From contig JBLDXI010000017.1 in assembly GCA_047495785.1 (NCBI GenBank), forward strand, positions 2,542,001 to 2,606,000: DNA of 64,000 nt. The letters run 5' to 3'. The number at the start of each line of letters is the position of its first letter. Position 1 is the stretch's first letter. Below, in pieces: positions 2,420-26,489 of this stretch. The position numbers and the translations under genes were made by a program. The stretch is from Lepidodermella squamata. Lineage: Eukaryota; Animalia; Gastrotricha. The notes beneath the pieces were generated by a model, which did not search any database, was not told where the DNA came from, and saw only the letters and a list, made by a program, of their open reading frames with translations.

Positions 2420-3950
2420 TCAACTCCGATGTGAACAAATAACTTCGAAATTGGGCGGAGAGTGAACGAGGCCAAGACGACCACCGCGAATATCAACAGG
2501 TTCTTTCAAAACGAACCGGAATCTGTGAAGCATAGCAGTGATGAAAATGAAGTATTCAACGCGGGCCAAAGCCTCTCCTAAACAAATTCTCGGGCCAATA
2601 CCAAATGGCATGAATTGCGACGAGTGTGTTAGCAATTTACCATCAGCATCAAGCCATCTGTCGGGATCGAATTCCTCCGGATCTTTCCAGTACTTTTCGT
2701 CGTAGTTTAGTGTTGCAAGGCTGCATGCAACGAGAGAAAAAGGAGGGCAGTCGTAGCCTCCGATTTTACAAGGTGTTTCTAAATTTGTATGGGCCAGTGC
2801 GCTTGGTACCAAACTGGAATGGCGGAGGACTTCGCACATAACAGCGTCGATGAAAACCAGCTTCGGCCGATCAGCTAAGGTTGGCAAACGATCTGTATCA
2901 ATGACTTGATCAATGGCTTCGTGGCATCGAGCTTGCAATTCAGGCCAAGTTGCTAGGTACAACAGCGTCCAACTTAATGCTGTCGCCGTGGTCTCAGTTC
3001 CCGCTACAAATAGATCAGTCATCGTGTAACCAAAGCTGTCCAAGTCCATGGCATCATTTTCTAGCTCTGACTTGATGTAAATATCGGGAAAATCACGAAT
3101 CATATCTGGGTTAAAATCGCGCCGATGCTCTTCTATAGCTGTGCGCAACAGGTTGATGGTGTAATCCTGAATTTTAATAAAGTCTCGACATTGAGGCGCA
3201 TCGGCGAAAAAACGCCAAAATGGAAGAATAAAGAAAAGACACTTTTCTTTAGCTGATCTCGTCGCAGTAGTTTCTATTAAACTAAGAAGTTCCAGCACTT
3301 TCGTGTCTTCGTACTGGAATCTGAAGAGAATATATTTCTGAATAGGCTAGATATTGGTATTCCTATCAACAATACCTTTTGCCAAATACCAAGGAGCAAA
3401 TGACATTAGAAACGTTGAGGCTAAGGAGCTTTTTAGGATTGAAAGGTTGCCCCACGCGAGCTTCAAGCTCCGGTATGAAATGGCGAACCTCTTCTTGAAT
3501 GTTGAGAACCATCTGCTCTTTACCCATGCCGAAATCTCGCATAGCCTTCATACCGAAACGGCGTCGCGATCGCCATTCATCATGGTTGGCTGACAAGATT
3601 CCAGGCCGCACGCGCTCATAACCTGCCAGGTGCTTATCAATGCGCCAACTGAAGTTTTTCGCCTGGGTTACCAACGTTTCCTGAATCAAAGCACTGTCCG
3701 AGAGAACGAAGACACGATACTGGCCTAAATAAATCGTGAAAACTGGTCCATATTTCTTTGCTAATTTGGGATTCAGCTTGAATCTTTCCCTTGTACTTGG
3801 GGCTTTCAAGGACATCAATATGTTGCCAAAAATCGGCAACGGAGTTGGCCCAGGTGGTAGGCGGTAAAATAACCGGTCATAAACGATTGTGGCAGAACCA
3901 TAGATTATGAAGAAGATTAAAAGGATTCCAATGAGATAAATTATTATCAT
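2420..3950 (-). CDS. Cytochrome P450, CYP2 clan (~491 aa, 2 coding exons)
   Basis: Exons 3950-3376 and 3320-2420 (55-nt intron). N-terminal TM plus PPGPTPLP hinge, I-helix AGTETT, EVLR, PDRW and heme motif FGIGPRICLG. Probable 5' UTR intron ~4024-3960. Confidence 0.95.
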
Positions 3951-5410: not shown

Positions 5411-8400
5411 ATGGATAATCGTGATCCTAATCAGATAATCATGAAACCAACTTCAGCTCTGTTCCCTGTAAACTTCCCGCCTGGCATCATTTCTATGAAC
5501 TATTGTCAATTTCATTCAAGCACTTGTTCGTACATGATTTCAATCGCCATGTAATTATTATAGTTTATAGGATCATAGGATGGATAGGAACAACATTCAG
5601 CAACAAGCTTTGAAGGATCGCCTTTACAAGACTTCCAATGAAAGCCAAGTAGTTTCGGTGATTGCAGCTCCCCCTTCGCTCAAGACGTTTTTCTCACGAC
5701 AAGAGGTGCTGGAAAAGCGCAAGCTTAAGGCTAAGTGAGATCACGCTTTGTGATTATTTGCCGAGCAATTTTACAAACTATTAATTAGATCTGAGCCAGA
5801 CAATGTGCCTAGCCTGATACCTCGACGTCCAACGTCAGGCACGTCATGTTTGTCTTTTGAACCTGTGGCGAGGTGTGTTCAGAACTATTTTACAGATGAG
5901 CCTGAAATCAAGAAAGCTATCATCATGGAATCGTACCCCCAACCACCACCGGATGATCCATCAATTGTTAGCTGGATATTTAACAAGCGAAAAGCGCTCG
6001 GTCTGGACTGCACTGTGTTACCTAGTTTACGTCCATCTGATGTCAAGAACTTGTTCCGCTGCGAGAAAGCCGAACCGTCTGATGTTTTCTCCTCGGCTAA
6101 GCCTCCAACTGGAAAACGATTTTCTACGGTAATTCAATGTTTGATTTATAGCACTGAAATCAATTTACAATGATATAATTAGAATATAACCCCATTGAAT
6201 GCTCAAGAACCCATGAAGGTATTCATATCAATATGCCGATATGTGTCGTTAGATGTCAGTTGTCAGTAATATACCCCACATTTTTTGTTAATTACTCACA
6301 CTCAGTCAACTTCAGTTGATAATTTGATTCTAAGAGCTGGCATTGCATGTTTTTATCTTCCAATGTCAATTTTCAGGCGGCCGAGGAATTTGTCTACTGC
6401 TTACCGGTTGACGTCATGGCTTTTTACAATCCATATGATCTGCGAGTTTCTAACCCAGACGAAGCTCGCCAAGCCAGAATCTGCTGGACTGTATCTGCCA
6501 ACGCTATTCTTCGGGTAAATTTCTTAGTTGGTAAACCTGCGTTACTCTTCATTTGTATTTAAAGTATGAGAGGGACGAAAAAGGCTATGAAGACAGTTCT
6601 CGTCAATTGGTCATGGAATGGCTAGCAGAGCGAGAGTTATTCATGAAACTCAGAGATATGCCGTTTGTTAGAAATTGCTGGCTGAGACGCTGCTTTCTAG
6701 GGTGGTCCAGAGAAGTTAAGCGCTCGAAATCATCCAATGCAAGGTTTGCTAGAAAAAATAATGCTTTACCATGCTTTATCTTTTTGTTCTATTTAGAAAT
6801 TTCCTCACACAAGAGCTATATTTTGCGGATGAAGTAATGTTACGCTGCTTTCATCATGCATATGCTTCCTGCGTTAAAGCTGCATCTTCGATGTCGCTAT
6901 GCCACCTCAATCCAGTCAATGCTCCCCCGATCACTCTAACGTTGTTCATGGATATGCAGCATGACAGATTATCTTCCGTTGCAAAAGAAATTCAGGCACT
7001 ACGCACATACATCGTCGATTGCGCATGGCAAGCATGCTTGGTTTGCGTAATTTCCGATGTGTATTGCATTTATAATTGCTGTTTTTTTCAGATTCATGCC
7101 GAGAGAGACGGCATCTTTCTTGTAGGCCGCCTAGAAGACGTTAAAGGACTCTTGTATTCAGACATGGCTGTGTGGCGCCGGAAGCTGTATCGCTACGTCA
7201 AGTACCTTCACCTGCTAGATTACGTACTTCTAGAATTCGGATTCACTCTCGTCATGAATGCAATGCTTTGTTTGAGCAATTATATTACTGAATCTGCTGC
7301 TGCCGGGTTATCGAATGATGAAATGAGAATGACTTTGAATGCCGCAATTTTATCGGTGAAACTTGTCTTGGAACCACCCAGGATGAAGTCCTGTAATATT
7401 TGTTGCTATTATTGTTTGTCATGATTATAAGAGAATGAATTTACAGCTCCCGGTCCGGCCGATCAGATTGTTGAAGAACATGACGAACCCCCTCCCCGAC
7501 CGGATTCTACCGCTGAACCAGGCACATCTGGCTTTGCTTACGAATCAAAGTGAGTAATTTTCCTATCGTGATTTGTCGGAGATAGCTGCCGAGCTGCGAA
7601 ATTCATTCGCGTGTATTTTGGATAAAAACTTACGTTATTTATTAACCCTGCGCGTAAAAATTTCAAAGGAATATTTCAAAAGAAGTGTGAGTTTTATTCA
7701 TTTATTTATGATGTACCAATGTGATTATTAAAGGCGTCTTTATCGATCGTGGCTTCATTTGCTGGCCGCGAGAATATCTTAAGCTTGCTATTCATTCAAT
7801 TTTTATTTACCGCGAAATTGTTTTTGGTTATTGCGCTGAATGGCTGCGTGTGGTTTTAATACTAATTTTCTATTATTTTTATGCAATGCCTTCCGAGTTG
7901 CGGATTTGAGCATTGTTTTGGTCAAATAATCAAAGAACTAAAATATTAATTAGCCGCCACATCTTGAAGCGTGCTCTTGAGCTATAATTGGACGGTTTTG
8001 TATTGATTGAGAATGTATTTTTTCAGCACCGCTGCGTTGTCAGCAAATACTGCCGAAACGTCTGTTCGACTCGAGCCTTCAGTAACCGCAGTTCTTCAAT
8101 CATTCAAACATCTAATCGAAGCCTATGAGGTCATAGCAGTCAGTAAGTCATAGAGTTTGTAACCTGAAAGCTAAAATGATCCTAATTTCGAAAAGTTCTT
8201 TGATGAGACGTGAGAAAAAGGTTTGATGAAAAATGATGAAAAAATCACTCAATTTGTGATGCTAGTCACATGGAAAATATGGGAAATATTTTAATGGGAA
8301 ATATTTTGCTGATTTCAGCCGATGTTCATTCGTTGTTAACTGAGGAGAAACTGTCGCCAATTCACTCTCCTCCTTACGGAGATTTGTTTACAACGAAGAG

Positions 8401-11400
8401 TCACGTGCTGAAGCTGGTGCCTTCGCGAGGACCATCTCGTCTACCGCCTTCGACCGCGGATTCTGGGCGCGGGGGAGGTTGGTCAACAGGAGCATCTTCA
8501 GCCGTCTTCCCAGTGAGTCGCGGTGAGCAGCAGAGACCCGAGAACATTATCGGACAGGCCGTCGCAGTCGTTACTGGCCTAACAGCGCCTGGCTCTTATC
8601 GCAGTGTTACATCGAACAGCGAAGCGCCTGAAATCGACGTTGATATCGATGATGACGCGCAAATTTGGCCAGACTCTACACTTCTTTTCGAGGACAATCC
8701 TGAATACGACAAAATGAAGAAAGACATTATCGGAGCTGCGGAAAACAACATGGAAAAAGCTGATGTAATCGCTAAAGATTACGACACATATTGTAGGATG
8801 GTTGTTCAGGCCTTCCAAATGCAGCCGTTGGTTGAGACAAAAGTCAGCGTTTGGAATACTGACGAATTTCATTTTGTTCTTCGCACGTTCACAAATCATT
8901 TGAATGATATGAAGGAAATGTCGTTGTTTCAACGCAGTGGAATGGTCATGTTAGAGGCGGGCGAGTTTGAAGATTCGTGCATCCCTTACCCGACGTCGAT
9001 CATTGACGTGATTTCCGAGCGTCTTCCTCAAATTGCGAACCGGCGTAACGATGATTTGCTCACAACAATTAAGGATGCGATCAAAATTCTGGAAGCTCCG
9101 CTCAAACACGTCGAGGAATTCGTTGAGCAGTTGTCGTTTCTCAACAAAATTACCAGCGATATCGGAGCGCTTGAGGTTGAATTTACCACGGTCACTAGGT
9201 TGTTCCATATCATTCAGGAGTTCAACATACCGTTGACCCCGGAGCAGACGGCGCTGTTCAAAAATTTACCCCAGTCGTTTTCGCAAATGAAGGCAACGAT
9301 TATTTACTGCGAGGCTAAGAAAGACGAAAATATTCGCCGATTCTCATCAGATCTTGACGATCTGATTGATGATGTAGCTCGTAAGGCTGCCGATCTCAGG
9401 ATCAAATCGCGTGATCCATTCCTAATCGATCCTGAGCAAACGAGTGCGAATGTGATTGGTGAAATTGCGCAACTTCAAGTTTTGTTGCAGCAACTGCAGC
9501 AAAGAATTCGGGCCTACGCTTCGTACGAGGCCAAATTCGGCGCGTCGGCTCATCCTCAAGTCGCGACTGGCCAGGCTAAGTACATCCAGGAATTCGCATC
9601 GAGCAATGAAGGCGCTTCGAGTAGCGGCCGGGCTCAGACAGTTGCAGCAACTCTAACCGAAGTAGAACGAGATTTGGCCCTGCGACGATTGGTTCGCGAA
9701 GCAGCTGAAGAGTGGTCTCTTCTCGTCGATGAATGGCTCGGAATGCCATTGGACAAGATAAACGTCGAATCTATGCAAAAGAACGTCTTCAAATTTAGGC
9801 AAACTGTTAATATGCTGGAGAAAGGTAAAACCTGTTTTCTTAGGCTGGATTCTTCTATAATCACGGTTTTCACAGGTCTTCCGATTAATCAGCTGGTTCC
9901 AAAGCTGAAAGAGGACGTTGATCGATTCGCCGATATGATGCCGATCATTGTTCATTTGAAAAATCCAGCTCTGCGCGTTCGTCATTGGAATATCATCGAA
10001 AGCATTCTGGAAATGACTGGAATGAAAGATCGCAGCTTTTCTTTTGGCGTCCTTGTTAATCAAAAGGTATATTGCTAGATTCAGTTTAGCTTTATGTTTT
10101 TTTTCTTTTCGTTTTGTCAATTTTGTTGTAAAATCCTTGATTGCTTGAATGTTAGACGTCTAATCCGATTGCAAAGGTCTGTGTACATTTCGCATTATGG
10201 TGTGATACATTTCCTGCATGCCCATCCATTCACGAGACTTCTATGAGCTTAAACCGATACATTTTTGAATATCTATTGATCAAGTCTTTTTATTGTCATT
10301 ATCGCGTTACAGAAGCTACAGGTACAGGATTTTTCTAATCTTTTTAGATCTCTTTGCGGTTTTAACGGCAGTAACACTGCACCAACTGCCCTGTTAACAC
10401 ATTTTCCTAAAATTATATTTTTTTTCTTAACACAAAGTCACAAGTTCAACCACACCTAAAACGGCTGAAATCAGGCGTAAAAAATGCTTCTTTAATTTTT
10501 GCTAAATTTTCAACTGACTTCTTCACTAAAATTTCCTACTACTTCTGAGCTTTAACGCGTTGCTGGCTAGATGTAAAATATTGCCCAATGTTTTTCAGAG
10601 TCTGAGTGTTCGAGAGAAAATACAAGAAGTTTCGACGACAGCTACGAACGAAGCAACCCTGGAAGTTATGCTGCAAAAGATTATGGACCTGTGGCAAGGC
10701 ACCAATCTTCGACTCGTGCCTCACTCCGGCCGAAATACCTACATCTTGGTTGGCGCCGATGAAATTTTCGTTCAGCTCGAAGAATCCCAGGTCACTTTGA
10801 GTTCAATTCGAGGCTCTCGATTCGTTGAACCCATTCGAGATAAAGCTGACGAATGGGACCGGAAATTGACAATGTTCTCACGGTCCCTTGAGGAGTGGAT
10901 CAATTGCCAACGCAGCTGGTTGTACCTAGAGCAGATTTTTTCAACACCCGACATTACGAAACAGTTGCCATCTGAGAGTAAATTATTCGGATCAGCCGAT
11001 CGATTGTGGCAAGATCTTATGCACTCAACCCTGGAACGGCCTAATGCATTGAAAGCCGCTACAGCACCCGGAGTCTTGGAATCTCTTCAACAGGCCAATG
11101 ATGCCCTGGAGAAGGTGTATAAATGCCTTGAAGATTACCTCGAGACGAAGCGACTTGTTTTCCCCCGATTTTATTTCCTATCAAACGACGAACTTTTAGA
11201 CATCTTATCGCATTCTAAAAGTGCCGATTGTGTCCAGCCTCATTTGGACAAGTGCTTCGGCAATATTAAATCTCTCGATATTCGCTACCCGATGAAGCAA
11301 CCGCCTAGTGTTAAGAACGCCTTCTCCTCCGAGGGCGAGGCTCTCCCCCTGCCTAAATACGTACGCGTTCGAGGCCCTGTCGAGCAATGGCTCGGTACAG

Positions 11401-14400
11401 TGGAGCAGGGCATGTTTGACTCGGTGAAACGATGCCTGAAACAGTTGCTTCAAGAGTGGTCTCAGGAGAAATACGTCCAGCAAGTCTTGGAAAATTCCGG
11501 CCAAATCGCCATTACGGCCTCAATTATCGAATTTTGCCGCGATGTGACCGCCTGTTTGACGACCGGAGTTTCGCTGAAGCGAGTTGAGGCTAAGATTATC
11601 GAACAGCTCAATGAGCTGGCCACGACAGTTCTTGGCGAGTTGAGCCTGAAGAACCAGCAAAAAGTCGAAGCCCTTCTAACTATCACTGTTCACAGCCGAG
11701 ATACCGTTGAAAGCCTGATTGCAGACGATATAACCCATGTCAATCACTTTGAATGGACTAAGCAGCTGCGTTTCGATTGGAACGATGCTGATAGCAACTG
11801 TTACATCAGCCAGTTCTCGTCGACCTTTGTCTACGGCTATGAGTACCTTGGCTCATCGTCGCGTTTAGTCCTGACCCCACTTACTGACCGTTGCTACCTC
11901 ACATTGACCTCAGCGCTCAGTTTGAACTTGGGCGGCGCCCCAGCCGGACCAGCCGGTACGGGAAAAACCGAAACTGTGAAAGATCTCGCAAAAGCACTCG
12001 GTAAACAATGCATCGTTTTCAATTGCTCGGAGGGTCTTGATTTCAAAATGCTCGGCAAATTTTTTGCCGGTCTCTGCCAGTCTGGTTGTTGGATTTGCTT
12101 CGACGAATTCAACCGTATAGATCTCGAAGTATTGAGTGTAGTCGCCCAGCAAATCTACACAATTAAGGCGGCGAAAGATGGTATCCTACAGCGATTTTTA
12201 TTCGAAGGGAAGGAGATTAAGTTGAACCCGTCCTGCGGGATTTTTGTTACTATGAACCCGACTTACCTCGGGCGTGTCGAACTTCCCGATAATTTGAAGT
12301 CCCTCTTCCGTCCGGTTGCCATGATGATGCCGGACTACCGCCTTATTGCTGAGGTTATGCTGTTCTCTCAGGGTTTCCGAGCCGCTAAAGTGCTATCGTT
12401 GAAAATTGTCAGTCTTTACCAGTTGGCTAGTAATCAATTATCTCAGCAGAATCATTACGATTTCGGAATGAGAGCGATTAAAACTGTGCTGATTATGGCA
12501 GGAAACAAGCGTAGGATGATGCAAAGAACCGGCGGTGATTCTGGCCGAAAATCGCCCGCCGAATTCGAAAATCTCGAATCTTCAGTTTTGATAAACTCAC
12601 TTCGCGACGCTAATATCCCGAAGCTGATCGCAGGTGACGTGCCAGCTTTTGAGAAAATTATTCAGGATTTATTCCCGGATATCGACGTACCACCAACGAA
12701 GAACCCGTTGCTGCAAAAATCGGTTGAAATCGCATTCAACGACATGGGCCTTGAACAATGGCCGACTCAGATCAACAAAGTCTACGAATTTTTCGACCAA
12801 CTCATCGTTCGACATGGTGTTATGCTGGTCGGCGGTAGTTGTTCCGGTAAAACTGTTGTTCGAACCGCGTTACAACGAGCTTTGACCCTTTTACCGAGCC
12901 TGGGTCTGCAGCCCGATGGTTCGGTTCATGTCGTCAATCGATCATTACGCGGAACTATTGACGTCATCGCGTTAAACCCGAAATGCGTCACGGTTGACCA
13001 GTTGTATGGCGCGACTGATCAAAACACCCTGGAGTGGTCTGACGGGCTAGTCGGAGTTGCGGCGCGACGTCTTGCCGCGAAAACAGCTGCTCATATCGCC
13101 GCGAACCAGCCGAAAATGGATGACTCGAAGTCATCAGTGCGTGACGATGTCGAATCGCCGCCGCCTGGTAGCCGGGTCGAAGCCCCCGAGCAACAATCTG
13201 GGGCTCAGCAACAGAACCAGGCCTGGTCTTGGATTGTACTCGACGGCCCGGTCGACACGATTTGGGTCGAAAATTTGAACACGGTCCTTGACGACACGAA
13301 AATGCTTTGTCTAGCCAATGGTGAGCGGATACGATTTGTTGGTGGAATGCGAGTTATTTTTGAGGTGGATTCGCTGGTCAATGCTTCACCGGCTACGGTC
13401 AGTCGTTGCGCTATGGTGTACGTTGACGCGGCCGATTTAGGCTGGAAGCCTTATATCAAATCTTGGCTTCGTAAACTGCCTCTCACGCTTTCAACCAGCA
13501 TTCGCAACCATTTAACACTGTTATTCGAACACTTTCTGCCGAAAGGATTCGAGTTTTTGCGGAAGCATCATGAGCACATGATCATGAAGCTGCCTGATCT
13601 CACGCTGGTTACGACCCTGTGCAACATTCTAGGGGCGTTGATTCTGTTTTTGAATGAAAACCAAGCCTTCAGTAAGTTGACACCGAAAAGTCCTGAGGAG
13701 GGCGGGGACACGCTGGATGATCATAACACAAAAGCAGGCGGTCAACAGCAGGAAGCCCATAAGAACGAAAAAAATGAGAAGGAACCTCGTGGGAAAGGCC
13801 AGCATCAGGGTAAAATCTACTACCCGCAAAAATACCCGCAAAACATCTTGCCATTCCTCAACAAATTATTCCTATTCGGATTTGTTTGGAGCTACGGCGG
13901 TGTTTTAAGGCGCCTTGACGATTCCGGCGATGACAGTGACTACGGCGATGCTATTAATATTGCCGCTGATTTCGACGCTTTCTGCCACGAAATTTTCGAA
14001 GTTGAACCACCGTTCGGTGTCCGCTTCCCGACAAGTATCGGCACTGTCTACTCTTATTTCGTTGACCTCGAAACGGGAAATTTCGTTCGTTGGGACGTTT
14101 TGATTCCCTCGACCCAGTCGCTGATTGAAACTGCCGGCGGGTCGACCTCAATGCGAATGAACGCAATGGGCGGTGGTGGGTCGAATACGGCCAGTGACGA
14201 GCTAATCCCTACCGTCGATACCATCCGTTTCTCGTTTTTATCCGCGTTATTCTTATTGATTCAAAAACAGCCGGTATTGCTGGTTGGTGAGTCGGGTGTT
14301 GGGAAATCAGCGCTTGTCAAAAACGCTCTGTCTCGGCTATGCAAGGAGAACGGGACAAGTTTGAAGGGTCAAGACACAATTCTTGGCGATGTCTTGAACT

Positions 14401-17400
14401 ACACCGATCGCAGCTCATCTATTCTAGATTCCATCGGAATCCTTTCAAGCAATACCGATGACAATTACGTCGCAAATGAATCATTCGATTTGCAATCTCA
14501 TGTAAGCTTCTAATGTCCCGATATAAGCGTTATTTGATCCGATTTACGCCGTAAAAGTTTATGATAAAAGATCCATCAGCTCGGGCCAAACTGAAGGCCC
14601 TTGATAGTGATGAAGAGGTTTGATATTCAGTTTCGAAAATGAGTTCCCTGATCACTAATTCTATCTGCCTCCTTGGCCAAAGCCTTCAGCCAGCAATTTT
14701 TTACGTTTTCTATTCAAAGAAATTCTTGAATCAGATTTTTCACTTGAGCTGGCCCTGGCCCGTAAAAATTACTTCTATTTAATTTGTTTTTTTTTCAGCT
14801 GAAATTTCGCACATTTTGATGATAATTAAGTCCTCATAAATATTTAAAACTTGTATTTTGGACTTTCAGATGGATGTGAACACGATACTGGGTAAGCAGA
14901 CTGGTCTCATCAGTTTGTCACTGCAGTTTTCGGGTCAAACAATCGCCAGTCGAATGTTGAGCCAAATCGCGTCGAAATTGGTTCGAAAAGGCCGAGATGT
15001 TCTCGGCGCACCTCGCGGCAAACGTCTCCTGATTTACATCGACGACATGAACACCCCAGTTCCGGATCAGTTCGGCGTCCAAGCACCTATGGAACTTCTC
15101 CGCCAGATGGTTGAATGCAACGGGTTTTATGACCCGGAAAAGCTGGTTTGGAAGGAAGTTTCCGACGTTTTGTACCTCGGCGCTTGCGGCCCGCCTGAAG
15201 CGGGTTGCCATCCGTTATCAAAGCGGTTATTGAAACACTTTTGCACCTTGGCGATTCCGCAACCAGGCGCCAGGAGTCTCCAGCACATCTACCAAGTTCG
15301 GCTGGGCAGGTTTTTCCGGGAGGGTGATTTCATGCCAGATGTTAAGGGCTCGCTAACGGCTATTGTCGGAACTGCCGTAGCTTTGTATCAAAAACTCTCC
15401 GTAACCCTGAAACCGACCCCAGTAAAGCTGTGGTACATATTCAATATTCGTGATTTGAGCCGGGTGGTTCTCGGCATGACTGCCGCTAATTCGCACGTGA
15501 TTCATAACAAGGAGCAAATTGCGTACTTGTTCGCGCACGAAATCGTCCGCGTATTTTGCGATCGACTGATTGAACAACGCGATCGCGAAACTTTTTACGC
15601 AATGCTTGCCAGCACGATGCACGATTACTTCAAGGGCCACTGGGATGCGACTGATCTGCAGAATCGAACGCTGTTGTATGCTGATTTTCTGGACACGAGT
15701 GATCCGTCTGCGACTGAGCGCATCTACAAGCCGGTTCAAGATATGAAGCAGTTGGCGAGGGTTGTTGACGAATTCTACCTAAATTCTCAACAAGGCGATA
15801 AGGTATGTCCGGTTTTTAAAATTAAATATTTTTTCGCTGATTCGCGGATAACTCGAATTATTCAAAATTTATTAGCGCGTTGCCGAAGCTTATTTTTTCA
15901 ACCAAGAATCTTCAAGAGTTGTGGTATTTTAATTAATCGTCTGTTTTCCTAGACGTGAAAAGTGATAGAATATAGTTAATATGTTAATGACACTGTAAAC
16001 ATTGATGTTAAAGAAAAATCAAGCCATGATAATGGCTCAATTATCGGGACAGAAAGACGAGTCGAAGGAGGTGAGTGAATTTAACTGAATTAAAATCACA
16101 TGGGTGAAATTACGCTGATTACGCTGTTTAATAAATATATCACGCGCTGGAGCTATTTATAACTAAAATACTAACGCTTTGAATTGTTCGTGCTAATTAG
16201 CGGAGAATGGAATCAGTAAGTTATTTGTCCGTAAACTCGGCGCATCGGAGTTTTCATACTACGTATTCCTATTCCTCTAGTAGACCCCATTAATTTTTAT
16301 AATTAGCGTGACTATGGACATTGGGCGCATAATATATTGAGATATTAATTTTTAAATGTTCTCATCTTGCTTTAATTTATCGTCATTTATCAGCTTGACT
16401 CCAATGTCGGTCGAACATAGACCCCGTTAATTTCGCTAAATCGATAATTGAAATCTTGTATCGGACTGAGTACTTACGTTTTGAAATTATTTAATCGCAG
16501 ATGAATAATGAGGAGGAGGTAAAGATTTATCCGCAAAAAGGCTTTCTTACAATTACAGCTGATACTTTTTATTTGCCTCGGTATTATTGGTATTATGTAT
16601 TCGTGTTCGATTTATTTATTTTATATTTAATTTCTGATTTTATTAGTGTGTGCTGCTTTGAAGCCTTTACCTTAACGCTTAACAGCTAGCCAACCCTAAT
16701 AACTTGAAAATAACGATGAATAATTTGGCTGTTGTTTCTTCAGCTCTCCTTGGTGTTTTTCCACGATGCGTTGGTTCACCTTGTTCGAGCAGCTCGAGTT
16801 TTCCGCCGTAGTATGGGCCACCTGCTCATGGTCGGTATCGATGGCATTGGAAAAACTACGACGGCTCAGCTTGCTGCCTCCCTAGCAGGTATATAATTTA
16901 TAATTTAATTAAAAAATAAAAATAGCTGATTTGAATTGAATAGCCTCAACCTTACCAGGAGAGACCTGTAAGACCAACAAAAAAAATGAAAATTATATGA
17001 TCAATTTACTTGCACGTCACAAAAAATTATGATTTGAACGCCCCGTTATTATGCGACCTTGATAATGATTTTCCGTATTTTTTCCCCTCAGCTGCGCAAA
17101 TGTTTAGGCTGGGTGTTACGCGAAGCTATGGCCGGACTGAGTTTCGTGACGATTTAAAGAAGATTTTCCGCACATCAGGAGTTGCTAACACAAACTGCGT
17201 GTTGCTCATCACCGACGGTGATATCATGCAAGAAGCTCTGATTGAGGACATCTCTTCAATCCTCAACACGGGTGATGTTCCTGATTTGTTCGATAATGAC
17301 GAACTCGACGCAATTATCATGGACACGAAAACGAACGCGACAGCTGCTGAAAGCGCTAGCGGGGAGTTGGACTCGCGAGATGGCATATGGGGCCATTTCT

Positions 17401-20400
17401 TGAAGCGCGTGAAAACCAACCTTCATATTTGCTTGGCCATGTCGCCGGCCGGTGACAAATTCCGACAACGCTGCCGGACAAACCCTGCTATTCTAAATTG
17501 CTGCACCATTGACGTGTTCGAAGTTTGGAACCCTGAGGCTATGATCAATGTTGCTGAGGCTTCATTTGTTCAAGTTGACGCGTTTGTACACCCACAATAC
17601 GACGCTAAAGTAAGAATTTTTACGAATATGCAAATTTTATAATTTAATTGGATTACATTTTGTTGCCGCCGTTTTAATATTGCGCGTTTAATATTATTTG
17701 ATAATGGAACATTTCTTACAGAATCCAAACCCAAATATCCCCCTCGACGTATGTTATAACGATATATATCGCCCCCAAAGCTTGCCACTGCAGCCTATCA
17801 CCGTCATTTAAAATCTTGGCGCATTTAAAAAATACCCATCTACAATTATTGTCAACTTGCTTTTAAAACAATCACTAGCTTCAAAGTCATCACTGAACCT
17901 CGATATTCGCACGATTTGCTACGGAAATAAATGTGTTTATTGCATTTTCCAGGTATTGAAGCAGCGATTGTCAGATGCCTGTGTTGACATTCATAGCTGC
18001 GCTGTTGAAGAAACGAAGCGATTCCGTGAGAAAACGAAGCGAATTTCATACGTAACCCCTGCGTCGTATATGATTCTACTGCGCACATTTGTAGCCACCC
18101 TGGGCTCGACCACCAAGTCTTTGACGAACGAACGCAACCGCCTTAAAATTGGGCTGGAAGAATTGACCGAGGCGAATGAACTCGTTGCGAAAATGCAAGA
18201 TGAGCTTGTGTTACTCGGGCCTCAAATCGAGCAAAAGTCGAAAGATACCGCCGATTTGCTGGACCGGTTACGTCGCGATACTGTCTCAGTCGAAGAAGTC
18301 AAGAAACTCGTCGAGTTGGAGGAACAAAAGTTGAAGCAGGAAACTGATATCATTGAAAAATACGCGATCGAGTGCGAGAAAGATTTAGCCTCTGTTGTTC
18401 CTCAAATTCACGCAGCTATCCAAGCGTTGGATGCTTTGGATAAGTCTGATATCGCAGAATTACGTGTCTACAGCAACCCGCCGGCTATTGTCACCATGGT
18501 CCTAGAGCCTGTTTGCGCCCTTTTAGGCCAGAAAACTGACTGGGCCTCAGCGAAACTCGTGCTGAAAGACCCTGATTTGCTTCGAAAATTGATCCACCTT
18601 GATAAGGAAAACATCGCGACCCCGGTTCTGGCGAAGCTACGCCAATGTACAAGAAACCCGAATTTCATCCCCGATAAAGTTGGCGAGGTTTCAGTCGCTT
18701 GTCGGTCTATGTGTATGTGGGTTCTGGCCGTTCAGCATTACAACGAGGTCTACACAACGGTTGGGCCTAAAAAGCGGCGGCTTCAAGAGGCCCAGGAAGT
18801 TTTGGGTATTTCGAAAACAAATCTCGAGAGAAAACGCGAGACGTTGCGTAAAATCGAGCATCAGCTGAGTTTGTTGAAGCAAAAGTATGAACTCAGCATT
18901 CAAGAACAGGAACAACTGAAACAGAAGCGAATCATCACCGGGGTCCGGTTACAACGGGCCCTTCAGCTGTCTACTGCCTTGGCTGATGAACGTGTTAGAT
19001 GGGGCGATTCTATCATCACGCTAGAACGGCGCCTGTGGTGCGCTATTGGGGACAGCCTCCTTAAAGCCGCAGCTACCGTTTATTTCGGCCCGTTCTCCGC
19101 TGATTTCCGCAGTAATTTGTGGAAACAGTGGATGAAAATTGTCACAGTTCAGTACAAACTACCATTCACTGGCAGCACTCAGATCGACGCAGATTTGTCG
19201 GCAGAGCCTTCGATCGCAAGTGAGACTATATCGACAAGTGGCGCATCTGCATCTGAGCAATCGGAACCTGGCTCGGTAGATTTGATAGGTTTGGCTGTTG
19301 AACCAGTTCAAATTTTGAATTGGTACAACAACAAACTGCCGCGGGACATTCAATCAGTTCAAAACGCGGTTCTTATTTCAAACTGCCAAACTTTCCCGCT
19401 GATTATCGACCCGCAAGGTCAAGCGATAAGGTGGATAAAATCGATGGAAGGCCCTGAATTGCGGGTTTTGGACACTGAAGACCCGCATTATTCGCAAATA
19501 ATGGAGCGAGCTATCAAAGTCGGTGAGCCGGTTTTGATTTCTGGCTTGAAAGAGACATTAGATCCTTACCTTCGATCGCTGCTTCGTAAAGAGATTTACA
19601 TTTCTCGAGGCATTGAAATCATCTTGATAAATAACGTCGAGATTGAGTACAACAAAAATTTCCGACTTTACCTATGCACGGACATTTACAACCCGCATTA
19701 CCTGCCCGCTATTTGCAATCTGGTGACCCTGGTCAATTTCAATGTCACGTTCAACGGTCTACAGGAACAGTTGTTGTCGGAAGTTGTCGAGCAGGAAGAG
19801 CCTGAATTGGAGCACGAGCGCACTAATTTGTTGATTAGTATCGCTGAAACTGGAAAATTGTTGAAAGAACTCGAAAATAAGTCGCTCGAACTGATTCATT
19901 CAGCTCACGGCAGAATTCTGGACGACGAAACGCTCATCCTTACCCTGGAACAAAGTTTGTTACCCCTTGTAAATTTTGAACTGTTTTAAACTATTTTTTT
20001 CTTATCCAGGTAAGGATAAGGCTAAGCACATAGCTGTTAGCCTCAAGGAATCGCAAGAGACGGAAAAGCGGTTAGAGGAAGCTCGAGCCAAGTACTTACC
20101 AGTTGCGGCTAGAGGAGCTACCCTGTACCATTTAATCACCGATCTGGCTTCAATTGATGTCATGTACCGATTTTCCCTCACTTGGTTTGCCGATGTCTTT
20201 AAAACGTCAATCGACATTGATCACCGGCTCGAAACCGCCGATGAATTGGGCGGCCGTTCAAGTGGGCTATCGGTCCGAACTCCAAAGTCGAAATTTCGCC
20301 AGGTCAGTGCCAATATGATGGCCGCGGCGAGGCAGGCTAGTTCCGCGGCGAAACCTTCATCACGCGGCTCGCCATCACCCACATCTCGAATGAGTGGAAA

Positions 20401-23243
20401 TAGCCCCGCTTTCGACCGATCGACTTTACTCACGAGACAGCGAGATATGATCGATAGGGTAACATCGACCATCTATTCGATCGTTTCTATGGCGATGTTC
20501 GCCGACCACCAGCCGCTGTTTTCGTTCCTTCTCGGTGTGAGAATCGCAATTCACGAGAAAACAGTGAGCGAGCGAGATTGGGCGTTATTCGCCCAGATTC
20601 CAAGCTTAGCAGCCGGGGTTGAGGAAAGAACGTTGGCCCAATACGACGGACTCACCTCTATGGAGCGGCTTGAATTTGGAAGTGTATCAGCGGAGAGAGC
20701 TGCTGCTATGTTCCCGCTACCTGCCTTCATTAAGCCTACGACCTGGCAGCAATGCCAGTTCCTTGAGAGCCAAATGCCGATTCAATTCGCCGGATTTCTA
20801 CGCTCACTTCGCTTCAACGAAGGCCAGTGGAGTAAATTTTTCACCGACCCAGACCCTTACACCTTGATGAGTAAGCCGCCCGATCTGCCGGAAACCGAGG
20901 GTGACGACGATGCTTCAAAGGCGAAACCTGTTTTTCATTGGGAAGCTTTGTCGGTTTTCCACCGCCTGATAGTAATTCGAATCCTGCGACCTGATGCGGT
21001 TTCATTTTCAGTTCGCCGTTATGTGGCTGATACGATTGGTGGGTATTACACCGAACCGATCAGTATGGACCTGCATAAACTCTTCAAACAATCGGCGTGT
21101 AATATACCGATAATTTTCATCCTATCACCTGGGGCTGATCCAACTTCGCAGCTTGTTAAATTTATTACAGAAGTTCGCGGCAGTCCGTTATATTTGGACA
21201 TTATCTCCCTTGGACGAGGGCAAGGCGTCAGGGCTGAAGAGCTAATCTCGAAGGCTCAAATTCTGAGGGGTCGTTGGATTTTCCTGCAAAACTGTCATTT
21301 AGCAGCCTCTTGGATGCCTAGCTTACAAGCGATTGTTGAAAGGTTCGGCCGGCCTGATGCTGATATCGACCCTCAATTCAGGCTTTTCCTCAGCTCAAAG
21401 CCTGACCCTTCGTTTCCACTCGGCGTTCTTCAATCCGGCTTGAAAACTACAGTTGAAGCGCCGCGAGGTCTGCGAGCTAAGCTGCAGCTATCCTTGGCCG
21501 GATTGCCTTCCTCGGTCTCGCAAAGATTCGCAATGGTAAACGGTCAGTCGTTTCATTTCCGCAGTTTACTCTACGGCCTTTGCTTCTTCAACTCGATCAT
21601 TCAAGAGCGGAAGAAATTCGGCCCAGTCGGTTGGAATAACATCTACGATTTCAACGCGTCAGATTTGGATGTCTCAGCCCTGCAGCTGAGTCAGCTGATC
21701 GAAACAGACGCAGCAGCCGCTTCCAACATTCCGTGGAATGCCCTGCGTTACCTGACTGGTCACGTGATTTACGGCGGCCGTGTCACTGATAATTGGGACA
21801 GGCGCTGTTTATTAACGATGCTTGATCAGTTTTACTGCGACAAGGCGTTGGAAACCGACAGGCCGTTTACTCCTGATGGAGTCTATAAACCGATTGACCC
21901 GCGAATTTCGCAAATATCCGACCTTAATCAAGTTGTCGATTCACTGCCGCCGAGTGATAGACCGTCAATTTTTGGTATGGACATAGTTGCTGATCGTGCG
22001 TCTCGGGAAGCTGAGGCGAATCGATTGATTGGCGATATTTTGCTGGTCGAACCTCGTTTAGCCCATGCAGTTCTCAGCGAGTCACGAACTCCGGATGAGG
22101 TAGTGCTCGATTTTTGCGCCGATCTAAAGCGCCGCCTGCCGATTTCTGTCGAACTGGACTCGGCTGCTGATGATCCGAATTTCACCATGTCCTCAACTCT
22201 CGCTACAGTTGAAAAACGTAAGCATTTGCGATTTGTTAATTCCTCCTTAATAATTTCGTTTGATTTTTCAAGAACGCATGCAGTCTCTGCCGGACCCAGT
22301 CGTCGATTTACTATCAACCTCAGCGCTGTTTGTTGTGTTGAGGCAAGAAATCGCTCGATATGACGGCTTACTCTCGGCTATTCACTTTTCGGCCGAAGAA
22401 TTGGCTAGTGCTATTCGTGGCGATATCGCTCTGTCGGATAAAATCGAAGCTCTTTACAATTCGCTGTTAAGCTACAAGCTGCCGGAAACGTGGCGGCACC
22501 AGAGCGGCTACGAGTCGAGCAAATCCATGGCCCTGTGGATATCTGACCTCAACAGCCGCTGCATGTTCCTGCGGCATTGGGCCACTTTGGTTCGCGACTT
22601 CTTCGTTTTCCATTGCCCGCAACTTTTCACGAATCGACAACCTGCGGGTCCTATGGCTTCAGTCGCTCCAGGCACGCTGGTTCAAGAGCCGCGAAATATG
22701 CCGAGAGCTTTTTGGCTGTCAGCTTTCATCTACCCTCAGGGTTTCCTCACCGCAGTCTTGCAAATGGCAGCACGTCGTTATCACGTTCCTGTCGACACGC
22801 TTCAGTTCAAATTCACGGTGACGAGTGAGCGGTGGGAGACGAAGCGCGGCATCGTTCAGCAAATTGCCGACGGGCCGCCCGCCCCTGACGCCGGTATATT
22901 AGTCGTTGGCCTGTACCTCGACTCGGCAAAATGGAGCACGGAAAGCTGTTGCCTGGTGTCCCTACAACACGCACAGGATGATAGATTCAACCCATTGCCG
23001 GAAATTCATTTTAACCCCTTGCCAAGCAACCAGCGTCCACCGACTGGATCGAAAGAAGCGGGTAACTCCGAGTACGAGTGTCCAGTTTACCGAACAGCGA
23101 AGCGTGCCGGAATTTTGTCGTCAACTGGCCAGTCGACGAATTTTGTCACATCGGTACAGCTGCCCTCGAGCCGCCCGCCTAGTGAGCTCATTCTTCGCGG
23201 TGTGGCTTTGCTATGTCAACTGGATGACAGAAACGAAAGCTAG
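5411..23243 (+). CDS. Axonemal (inner-arm type) dynein heavy chain, DNAH14-like, ~4,700 aa
   Basis: Phase-consistent exons: 5411-5467, 5571-5734, 5789-6128, 6183-6218, 6377-6514, 6565-6743, 6797-7040, 7092-7392, 7447-7549, 8027-8142, 8319-9824, 9876-10066, 10599-14501, 14558-14617, 14870-15802, 16744-16888, 17092-17609, 17953-19954, 20010-22217, 22273-23243. P-loops: AAA1 GPAGTGKT with CFDEFNR, AAA2 GGSCSGKT, AAA3 GESGVGKS, AAA4 GIDGIGKT. Stalk/MTBD, AAA5 PLIIDPQGQ, C-terminal YECPVYRT...STNFV. The 5'-most exons are less certain. Confidence 0.93.
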
Positions 23244-23623: not shown

Positions 23624-26489
23624 TTACGGGCCATCCATCCCGCCTTGAACAGTACATCTTTTCTCGACATTGACATGGAAGGGCATTTTGAAGTCGGGGA
23701 AATCTACTTGCCAGCCAAAGCGAGCGCGTCTTTGGTGCAAATCACCGATCATTTCACTAGTCGTTTTGATCTTGGGCCAAATTTTGATCGGAGTGTAACT
23801 AGCATCTTCTTTCGTCTCGAGCTCTTTCGCCAACGCAGCAGCGGCTCGCAAAATTTCAGCTCGCTTCTGGGCGGATAACATGCGTTCCATTTCGACATTT
23901 CGCTCTTGTGTAACGCTCATCGAAGAAGCGGCGCCACCCTTGTCGCGGGCGGAGCCTTGGGCAGATTTACGAGGGCTCTTTCGAGCGGATTTTGGCCCTT
24001 TCTTTTTGTCGGGTGGCGGTGGTAAAGAGTCGTACTTCAGCTTCACAGCGTCCCATACACGAGGATCGGCCCATTGACAAGCAATATCGACAGGGTTGAG
24101 ACCTTTCTTGTTTTCATTTTGAACCTTTGCCCCGCGATCTATCAAAAATTGAACCAGCTCAACTCGAGAAGTTTCAATCGCTTTCATGAGAGGAGTTCCA
24201 CCTCCAAGGGCGATAGGGTTCATATCAGCGCCGTGGTCTAGTAACATCTGAACCACATCTAGCTTGCCACTGTGACACGCGTGATGCATTGCTGTCCATT
24301 TGAAGTTATCCTACAAGTAATTAGAAATGAGAGCTGAAATTACAACCAGCCTAAACTACTCACTTTCGCATTCACATCAGCACCACACTCGATAAGGAAC
24401 TTGGCGATGTTAATGTCGCCCATGCCACAAGCAACCATAAGGGCAGTTTTGTAATAGCGATCACGTGTGTCCACCGGTAAGCCTTTGAGAAAAGCGTTTG
24501 TCAATGTATTGTAATCACCCCGCCGCGTTGCGTCGATGACACTTATGTGCTGATTTTCCGGAGGATCGACGTACCAAGCTGAGTCATCTTGAACAATAGA
24601 AGCGGGAGGGCAGTCGCGATTGAATCTTTTGTGATCGGTGTAAAGCATAAATTTGTCGACGTAGAGTTGAGGTGGATTGCCGCCCGCAGTTCTGGGTCCT
24701 TCGTCTTGAATAGCAATATTTACCGGAGGCTTCGAGCCTTTCTTGCCCTTCTTGCCCTTCTTTTTCTTTTTCTTCTCTTTCTTTACGAATGCTCTGTAAA
24801 ATCAAAACGCTATTTCGTATTGACATTATTTAAAGCGTTATTCGCTTACGTTAACAGGTAATTTTTATGGAGATATTTCTTCCCGACGAGAAAATCGTTG
24901 TAATCAACGGATCCGTCGCTCGTGTGCAGCTGAATGAGTCGCTTGATAGCCTCCTCGGGTAACTGAATGATGTTGATTGATAGTAGCCATTCAGTGAAGC
25001 TGTCGTTTGGGACGCGCCCTGTCTTCTCTTCGTCCATTTTTCTGAAACAAAGGTAAGAGCTTGAAAATTGTGTGCAAAATAACCGCATAGTGAAACATCA
25101 ATAACACTGTAAAAACTGTGGGATATGATTCACGTAGAACAGTGATGAAACCCTTATTACTTCATAAGCAACTCACCACTGAGTAGGAATAACTGATATG
25201 TTAGATCGACAATTTTCATATAGGTAATCAAATTATTAGACATAGCGCTTACGTGAAAGTCTCGAGTATTTTCTCCTTGTTCGTTTGGCAATAATCATAG
25301 AGAGAAATTGCCCATCGCTCAGCTTTGGCAACGGTCTTCCCGAAGCTTTTCTCTGATTTACGAATTTCCTTGACGCAATCCTTGAATCCTCCATCCTTGG
25401 CGATAACGCGCGGAACAAGTCCCTCATTATTCTTTGGCTTCGGATTGCTTCCTAAAGCAGCCATGAGAAATTTATCAGTCATCAGTCAATGCTACATAAG
25501 GGCGTCATTACCTCGTTGCGCCAAGAATTTACAACACATAGCATGACCTTTAGCCGCCAAATGAACTGGTGTATTTCCATTAATGTCCACTTGGTCGAAT
25601 ATTGCTCCAAAGCCGGAAAGGGTTAGCAAAACATCAAAATGACCGTTCTAAGACGAAAACCCAAGACATAAAAATGTCCTATTACACATTAATTAGCTAT
25701 ACCTTAGCAGCTTCATGCACGGCATGCCGCTTTTGCCGATCAATAACGTCTGCGTCCGCCCCGAAGATGAGCATTGCCCGAACCGCAGCTGCGCTACCAC
25801 TTGCTGCTGCCTCCATTAGCGCTGACCGCCCAGTTTCCTGAGAAAAGCAAGATTGAACAATCTTTGTAAATTAAAGGCGCATGCGGAACCTTGTCTATAA
25901 TGTTGGCGTCAGCTCCAGCCTCCAGTAAGTGAATAATGCTCGATTCGTTGGATTTGGCTTCAAGACAAGCTTCGTAAAGTGCAGTACGCCCAGTTGGACC
26001 AGCGATGTTGATATCGGGCTTCTTATCAAGAATCATCTCCATACACTTGCTGTGTCTCTCAGTAGGCGCTGCCAAGCAATAAGCCAATACCGCTAAACAG
26101 TCATCAATGAACGATCTATTATAAACTGGCATATAAATATTACTTTTGCCCTCCGCATCTTTGATATTGACGTCAGCATCGGCAGCTAGAAGTTCTTTCA
26201 CGCAGTCGACGTGCCCGAATTTTGATGCAACCATGATGGCCGTCCGACCTTTGAAATCAATAACATCAGGATGCGCTCCAATGCTTAGCAGACATTTGAC
26301 AGTTTCGAAGTCATTAGTTTCACAGGCAACGATCAAAGCTGTCAGCCCTTCGTTGGCTTCGTTAATGTTGACCAAGAATGGAACGCCCATTTGGCACAAC
26401 TTCTGTATTTGCTGACGATCTTGCTCTCGCACATATTGAATAAGCTTCGTAACTTGGCAAATTTGAAGCCGAGTTTGAGCAAGTGGCAT
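23624..26489 (-). CDS. ANKEF1: Ankyrin repeat and EF-hand domain-containing protein 1 (~775 aa, 8 exons)
   Basis: Exons 26489-26144, 26092-25890, 25837-25703, 25647-25512, 25451-25253, 25041-24850, 24793-24364, 24310-23624. N-terminus MPLAQTRLQICQVTKLIQYVREQDRQQIQKL resembles ANKEF1; ankyrin repeats, EF-hand-like segment and Lys-rich stretch present. Confidence 0.88.

Follow-up and report, generated by a model that had tools for sequence, protein, structure and literature searches.

The window analyzed here, a 64,000-nt stretch of the genome of the gastrotrich Lepidodermella squamata (assembly GCA_047495785.1, contig JBLDXI010000017.1, positions 2,542,001 to 2,606,000, forward strand), contains a gene for an axonemal inner-arm dynein heavy chain. 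Three short segments inside long introns of this gene are probably real microexons that are translated, a reading to which we assign a probability of about 0.6. Each segment is bounded by AG and GT, has a length that is a multiple of three, and appears to have been preserved by selection in a related species, the rest of whose introns is saturated with substitutions. Most likely, the mRNA includes the segments and they are translated, where inclusion is inferred from the sequence. They would lengthen the protein, which otherwise aligns collinearly with other dyneins, by six residues in the tail, three in the linker and three in the AAA4 module. The sub-introns flanking them are short (70–340 nt), so the spliceosome could recognize them by intron definition. 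The three segments are:

7669..7686, plus strand: putative 18-nt microexon in the tail, acceptor AAAG, donor GTGAGT, phase 2
10313..10321, plus strand: candidate 9-nt microexon in the linker, AAGCTACAG between ttacag and gtacag, encoding K-L-Q in phase 0
16959..16967, plus strand: putative 9-nt microexon in AAA4, GAGAGACCT between ccag and gtaaga, phase 1

A previous sequence-only reading of the window had listed six candidate microexons. The tail and AAA4 segments were numbers 1 and 5 on that list, from which the linker segment was absent.

The conservation comparison rests on one related species. A search with the dynein exon 17094–17609 matched a 77%-identical open reading frame (ORF), P0151, whose source contigs L001–L003 in ENA metagenomes are 99.4–99.7% identical to one another and hold the orthologous gene. 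The dynein of L001 shares 76.5% protein identity with that of the window over 2141 residues. An ankyrin-repeat gene on the minus strand lies downstream in both species (23640–24500 in the window, 16030–18695 in L001) and has kept its position at 66% DNA identity, which confirms the orthology of the locus. At 4-fold degenerate sites the two species are 32% identical (n = 622). Hence, neutral sites are saturated, and any stretch of intron that can still be aligned is under constraint. The seven long introns of the gene have the same positions and phases in L001 as in the window, where they are:

7550..8026: intron Ia, 477 nt, phase 2
8143..8318: intron Ib, 176 nt, phase 1
10067..10598: intron Ic, 532 nt, phase 0
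14502..14869: intron Id, 368 nt, phase 0
15803..16743: intron Ie, 941 nt, phase 0
16889..17091: intron If, 203 nt, phase 1
17610..17952: intron Ig, 343 nt, phase 0

The strongest signal comes from intron Ia. When the whole gene was compared with L001 by blastn, a single intronic match was obtained, between 7665–7693 and L001 710–738 (27 of 29 positions identical), and this block covers the tail microexon together with its AG and GTGAGT. The local alignment score of intron Ia was 48, compared to 20.8 ± 2.1 in the null. Even when set against aligned coding sequence, the block falls within the top 0.5% of 29-nt windows. Both substitutions fall at codon position 3, with K-NISKE-V in the window and R-NISKD-V in L001. 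Inclusion would replace N by K-N-I-S-K-E-V, a net gain of six residues in the tail. The peptide at this segment is K-NISKE-V and not EYFKRS, since the host intron is 7550–8026 and its phase is 2. What the sequence-only reading took for its first long intron is not a single intron, as it contains a real exon of 116 nt that went unmentioned. The tail exons on either side of intron Ia are:

7447..7549, plus strand: tail exon 5' of the first microexon, ending in phase 2, donor GTGAGT at 7550
8027..8142, plus strand: 116-nt tail exon, acceptor TTTTTCAG, donor GTAAGT, entered in phase 2 and left in phase 1

The frame of exon 7447–7549 (EPG..G[FY]AYE) is kept in L001, where the phase-2 donor lies at the same place, and an alternative frame was ruled out on the grounds that the EPG..AYE frame is the one that is kept. 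Exon 8027–8142 has good splice sites and phases that fit both of its neighbors, and its translation of 39 residues has a homolog at L001 1147–1262.

In intron If, the best local alignment pairs 16955–16973 with L001 9759–9777 (17 of 19 identical), and 5 of 200 shuffles produced an alignment as good. It comprises CCAG, GAGAGACCT and GTAAGA in the window against CCAG, GAGTGACGT and GTAAGA in L001, with peptides GETS and GVTS, respectively. The microexon is identical in three metagenome contigs. It would convert A into G-E-T-S, and the three residues gained would lie past the AAA4 P-loop, between the helix after it and the following strand. The blocks 7665–7693 and 16955–16973 are the only conserved ones in the seven intron pairs that are not of low complexity, and a scan of these pairs with 15-mers (13 or more matches) found nothing further beyond AT-rich runs.

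In intron Ic, the sequence-only reading had chosen 10156–10176, and the conserved segment turned out to be 10313–10321 instead. Its counterpart in L001 (3407–3415, AAACTTCAG between tttatag and gtaaaa) encodes KLQ too, both differences being synonymous, and it forms the best same-length candidate pair in this intron (P = 0.001 in shuffles). The exons on either side of intron Ic meet at positions 124 and 127 of Pfam DHC_N2, with two residues between, so KLQ would be a three-residue insert in the linker. Among the three conserved candidates this one is the least secure.

All same-length candidate pairs in each intron were compared with 1000 shuffles of the L001 introns, which gave P < 0.001 for intron Ia, 0.001 for Ic and < 0.001 for If; no significant pair was found in introns Ib, Id, Ie and Ig. 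In L001, splice sites and segment are both conserved for 7669–7686, 10313–10321 and 16959–16967. The three segments contain six substitutions in all, and five of these hit codon position 3 when read in the frame that the flanking exons impose, a bias with a binomial P of ~0.018 in a small sample, if one third of sites are taken as codon position 3.

Several results weigh against the three segments being translated microexons. The AAG acceptor of the tail microexon occurs in none of the 16 real acceptors and its splice-site score is poor. Both 9-nt microexons rest on 7 matches out of 9, and the KLQ case becomes weaker after discounting the CAG/GT consensus, as three of its seven matches are the CAG of the donor consensus. 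The inserts are not required by the protein, since skipping leaves it in exact collinearity with human DNAH6 at AAA4 and with Pfam DHC_N2 in the linker. Protein searches with exons 17094–17609, 14870–15802 and 8321–10066 recovered only the related species and distant dyneins, and no transcript-derived protein of Lepidodermella squamata. Furthermore, a single species underlies the conservation.

The tail microexon overlaps a possible regulatory structure:

7671..7688, plus strand: 7-bp stem with an AAAA loop, pairing the end of the tail microexon with the GU of its donor

The stem covers most of the tail microexon and has seven pairs, two of them G-U, in the fold of the two-sequence alignment. 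Folding each sequence singly to its minimum energy yields the stem as well. Only two substitutions separate the species within it, and they form one compensatory change from U-A to A-U. It is weak (~−4.5 kcal/mol), with two sequences compared. Stem-loops over 5' splice sites regulate cassette exons in MAPT exon 10 and, as TSL2, in SMN2 exon 7. As in those cases, a small stem pairs the exon end with the donor GU, here with one compensatory change; unlike those cases, the stem has 7 bp including two G-U pairs and is known from two sequences. Together with the unusual AAG acceptor, the stem is only a hint that recognition of this microexon might be regulated.

Might all of these segments, the conserved ones included, be chance AG-GT pairs with a spacing of 3n in long AT-rich introns, none of which is spliced in? 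The six segments of the sequence-only reading are indeed present at the coordinates it gave, each preceded by AG, followed by GT, a multiple of three in length and stop-free in the phase of its host intron. However, the seven long introns contain 24 in-phase stop-free segments of this kind (9 to 27 nt), compared to 21.6 ± 4.9 when they were dinucleotide-shuffled 500 times; a count of 24 was reached in 33% of the shuffles. The shuffled-intron comparison proposed along with that reading thus places the bare pattern at chance level, and without comparative data the pattern is uninformative. The antisense strand has strong pairs just as often, and the protein is complete without the segments. Yet chance leaves unexplained why identity reaches 27/29 and 17/19 at exactly these segments against 32% at 4-fold sites, as well as the P values of the pair test and the third-position bias, and we regard it as improbable. 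The conserved blocks could instead be intronic RNA elements, such as a small stem-loop or a decoy splice site, that tune the removal of long introns and are not exons. This would agree with the stem at 7671–7688 and its compensatory pair, with the weak acceptor of the first block, and with the donors of the 9-nt block, which lie within small hairpins in both species, though the hairpins differ. In contrast, conservation stops at the AG and just beyond GTRAGT, all three blocks are stop-free multiples of three, all but one of the six substitutions hit codon position 3, and KLQ is kept through two synonymous changes. Given also that the stem is weak and seen in two sequences, an intronic role seems doubtful.

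If the three segments are translated microexons, they might be constitutive, that is, always included and without any isoform programme. Short flanking sub-introns that suit intron definition, a coding-like constraint and a compact genome would all agree with this, and it is a possibility to be taken seriously, even if we consider it somewhat unlikely. On the other side, the skip forms match the dynein family exactly, and both the AAA4 intron and the exon within it originated in this lineage. A scan of metagenomes and two further contigs yielded only distant orthologs (40–62% identity), whose intron positions differ. The AAA4-site intron is absent there, the protein having the same length at this site as the skip form, and therefore intron If and its 9-nt exon are lineage-specific. 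Young exons usually start out alternative. Moreover, all three segments preserve the frame, for which the prior is ~1/27 with random lengths, and the first combines a weak acceptor with a stem over its donor. Alternatively, the three microexons would be optional cassettes giving up to eight isoforms that differ in tail, linker and AAA4 inserts, with inclusion of the tail insert set by the stem that hides its donor. We offer this proposal tentatively and think it unlikely. The sequence-only reading went further and inferred combinatorial microexon tuning of the motor, which would make its six segments together a regulated programme of SRRM3/4-eMIC type. In favor of this are the conservation of two of the six and the positional analogues that L001 has for numbers 2, 4 and 6; against this, four of the six lack sequence conservation and the conserved ones lack an upstream UGC common to both species, which leaves such a programme very improbable. 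In the ~40 nt preceding each of the conserved microexons, the two species have no UGC in common, and in the window one occurs at the first microexon only. A six-frame scan of the genome gave no match to PF15230 (SRRM_C), a short domain for which the search is insensitive and had no positive control. The link of these microexons to SRRM3/4 and eMIC finds no support.

Frame-preserving animal microexons of 27 nt or less have reportedly been catalogued mainly in neural genes. The three dynein segments resemble them in length (9–18 nt, a multiple of three), in strong nucleotide conservation and in the few residues that they would add at probable surface or loop positions of a structured protein. 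They differ from them in their host, a gastrotrich axonemal dynein, in having no conserved upstream UGC, and in intronic conservation that extends just 4–7 nt past the exon. Full-text literature searches turned up no publication that describes microexons in axonemal dynein heavy chains. If the three segments enter the mRNA, gene models lacking them miss 12 residues, and omission of 9-nt exons is a frequent failing of annotation. The linker and AAA4 inserts would sit in moving parts of the motor. If their use is optional, this would be a new way of varying ciliary beating in an animal that moves by cilia. At present, the overall weight of the finding is modest and at the level of annotation.

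The remaining four candidates of the sequence-only reading are most likely chance AG-GT pairs, judging from the comparison with L001, so that of its six candidates two are conserved with both splice sites and four have no support beyond chance:

10156..10176, plus strand: candidate 2, peptide TSNPIAK, donor GTCTGT, no sequence counterpart in L001
16053..16070, plus strand: candidate 3, peptide KDESKE, no counterpart in L001
16501..16518, plus strand: candidate 4, peptide MNNEEE, no sequence match in L001
17722..17748, plus strand: candidate 6, peptide NPNPNIPLD, sequence not conserved in L001

The TGC reported just upstream of 10156–10176 is present at 10143–10145. The positional analogue of this segment in L001 is 3218–3241 (24 nt versus 21 nt), and that this candidate is a real exon is quite unlikely. 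We judge 16501–16518 to be equally unlikely as an exon; it has the highest splice-site score of all candidates (14.4 as the sum from a position weight matrix, PWM), and an unrelated L001 candidate lies at a similar relative position (9328–9345, 18 nt in both). The acceptor of 16053–16070 scores −4.7 with the same PWM and has no pyrimidine tract, and we hardly expect this segment to be an exon. The analogue of 17722–17748 is L001 10461–10484 (24 nt versus 27), which is stop-free with a strong acceptor and lies 88 versus 112 nt past the donor; this candidate is unlikely to be real, if less so than the other three. The positional analogues of candidates 2, 4 and 6 are weak evidence and carry little weight, as there are many candidates per intron.

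The PWM, built from 16 real sites, seemed to show an enrichment of strong candidates over shuffles, and the antisense strand yielded equally many strong pairs. The enrichment thus reflects intron composition and not selection. It was discarded as evidence for this reason and because the best-conserved microexon scores poorly. An excess of multiples of three among strong pairs (7:2:2 at a score of 6 or more, both species) was likewise set aside, as it lost significance when overlapping pairs and the conserved cases were left out. A candidate of the form ttag, CG..., gtaagt whose first residue is R occurs in both species in intron Ie, which has 941 nt in the window (16201–16215 in the window, 15 nt; 9161–9181 in L001, 21 nt). 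The two lie 398 and 433 nt from the donor, their sequence is not conserved, and they probably arose by chance.

Other kinds of RNA feature were considered for the conserved segments. A small RNA, spliced-leader gene, snoRNA, miRNA or mirtron, or repeat was ruled out: an Rfam search at E ≤ 1 gave no match to the intronic elements, the genome contains one copy each of the 29-mer of the tail microexon and of introns Ia, Ic and Ie, and the fold z-scores of the elements range from −1.7 to +2.0, with no pre-miRNA-like fold found. A recursive splice site, in which AG directly abuts GT within a very long intron, was rejected as well, since the segments have 9–18 nt and their host introns 203–532 nt.

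The host gene itself was placed by its Pfam order, its matches to DNAH6 structures and collinear tblastn alignments:

5754..23243, plus strand: dynein heavy chain gene, DNAH6/DNAH14-like, axonemal inner-arm; stop codon 23241–23243, 5' end not fixed

Scanned exon by exon, its Pfam domains follow the order DHC_N2, AAA_6, AAA_lid, AAA_7, AAA_8, MT, AAA_9, Dynein_heavy, AAA_lid_11 and Dynein_C. The gene thus has the linker (DHC_N2), six AAA modules in order, the microtubule-binding stalk and the C-terminal domain of a single-headed inner-arm dynein. The top PDB matches of the protein are DNAH6 chains from three species (E ~1e-284), and tblastn of the proteins P0001–P0004 against the window was collinear. 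On this sequence evidence, the gene is a single-headed inner-arm axonemal dynein heavy chain of DNAH6/DNAH14-like type, the choice of branch being made without a tree. The best solved relative is human DNAH6 (inner dynein arm heavy chain; PDB 8j07 chain g5, 9fqr chain Xz), which has an identical domain order and matches the skip form of the window residue for residue at the AAA4 junction, at about residues 2464–2466. Unlike human DNAH6, the protein of the window groups with its nearest cluster representatives P0001–P0003, proteins of 4500–4600 residues with 47–53% identity. The collinearity without inserts that the sequence-only reading asserted for all its segments is borne out at introns Ic, Ie, If and Ig, whereas the tail is too poorly conserved to judge.

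Compared to the 4616-residue P0001, the big exon shows no large indels. Compared to P0004, a DNAH6-like protein of 4150 residues, it has four additional segments of 15–43 residues each:

12516..12560, 13131..13229, 13647..13775 and 14133..14186, plus strand: extra segments relative to P0004, between the AAA1 domain and the AAA3 P-loop

These extra segments (12516–14186) are also present in P0001, and since they are shared with that protein, the dynein may be nearer to the DNAH14-like branch than to DNAH6. P0011, of 4154 residues, has insertions at similar places.

Introns were fixed by tblastn with P0001–P0004, by junction scoring and by the ortholog in L001. Protein searches were run exon by exon, and junction peptides of 24–81 residues were joined solely for choosing splice sites. 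Besides the seven long introns, the gene model contains:

6129..6376, plus strand: probable thirteenth intron, 248 nt
6515..6564, plus strand: intron, 50 nt
6744..6796, plus strand: intron, 53 nt
7393..7446, plus strand: intron, 54 nt
19955..20009, plus strand: intron, 55 nt
22218..22299, plus strand: intron, 82 nt

Hence, introns of ~50 nt are not the majority that the sequence-only reading described, as about 5 of 13 span 50–82 nt and the remainder 176–941 nt. Across the two species, 15 of the 16 real acceptors consist of a T-rich stretch followed by CAG (TTTYCAG) and resemble nematode acceptors, while donors are loose, with GTATAT occurring twice. Introns 19955–20009 and 7393–7446 are absent from L001, where the ORFs run uninterrupted (10659–14798 and 1–645), which points to a recent gain or loss of these introns between the two species.

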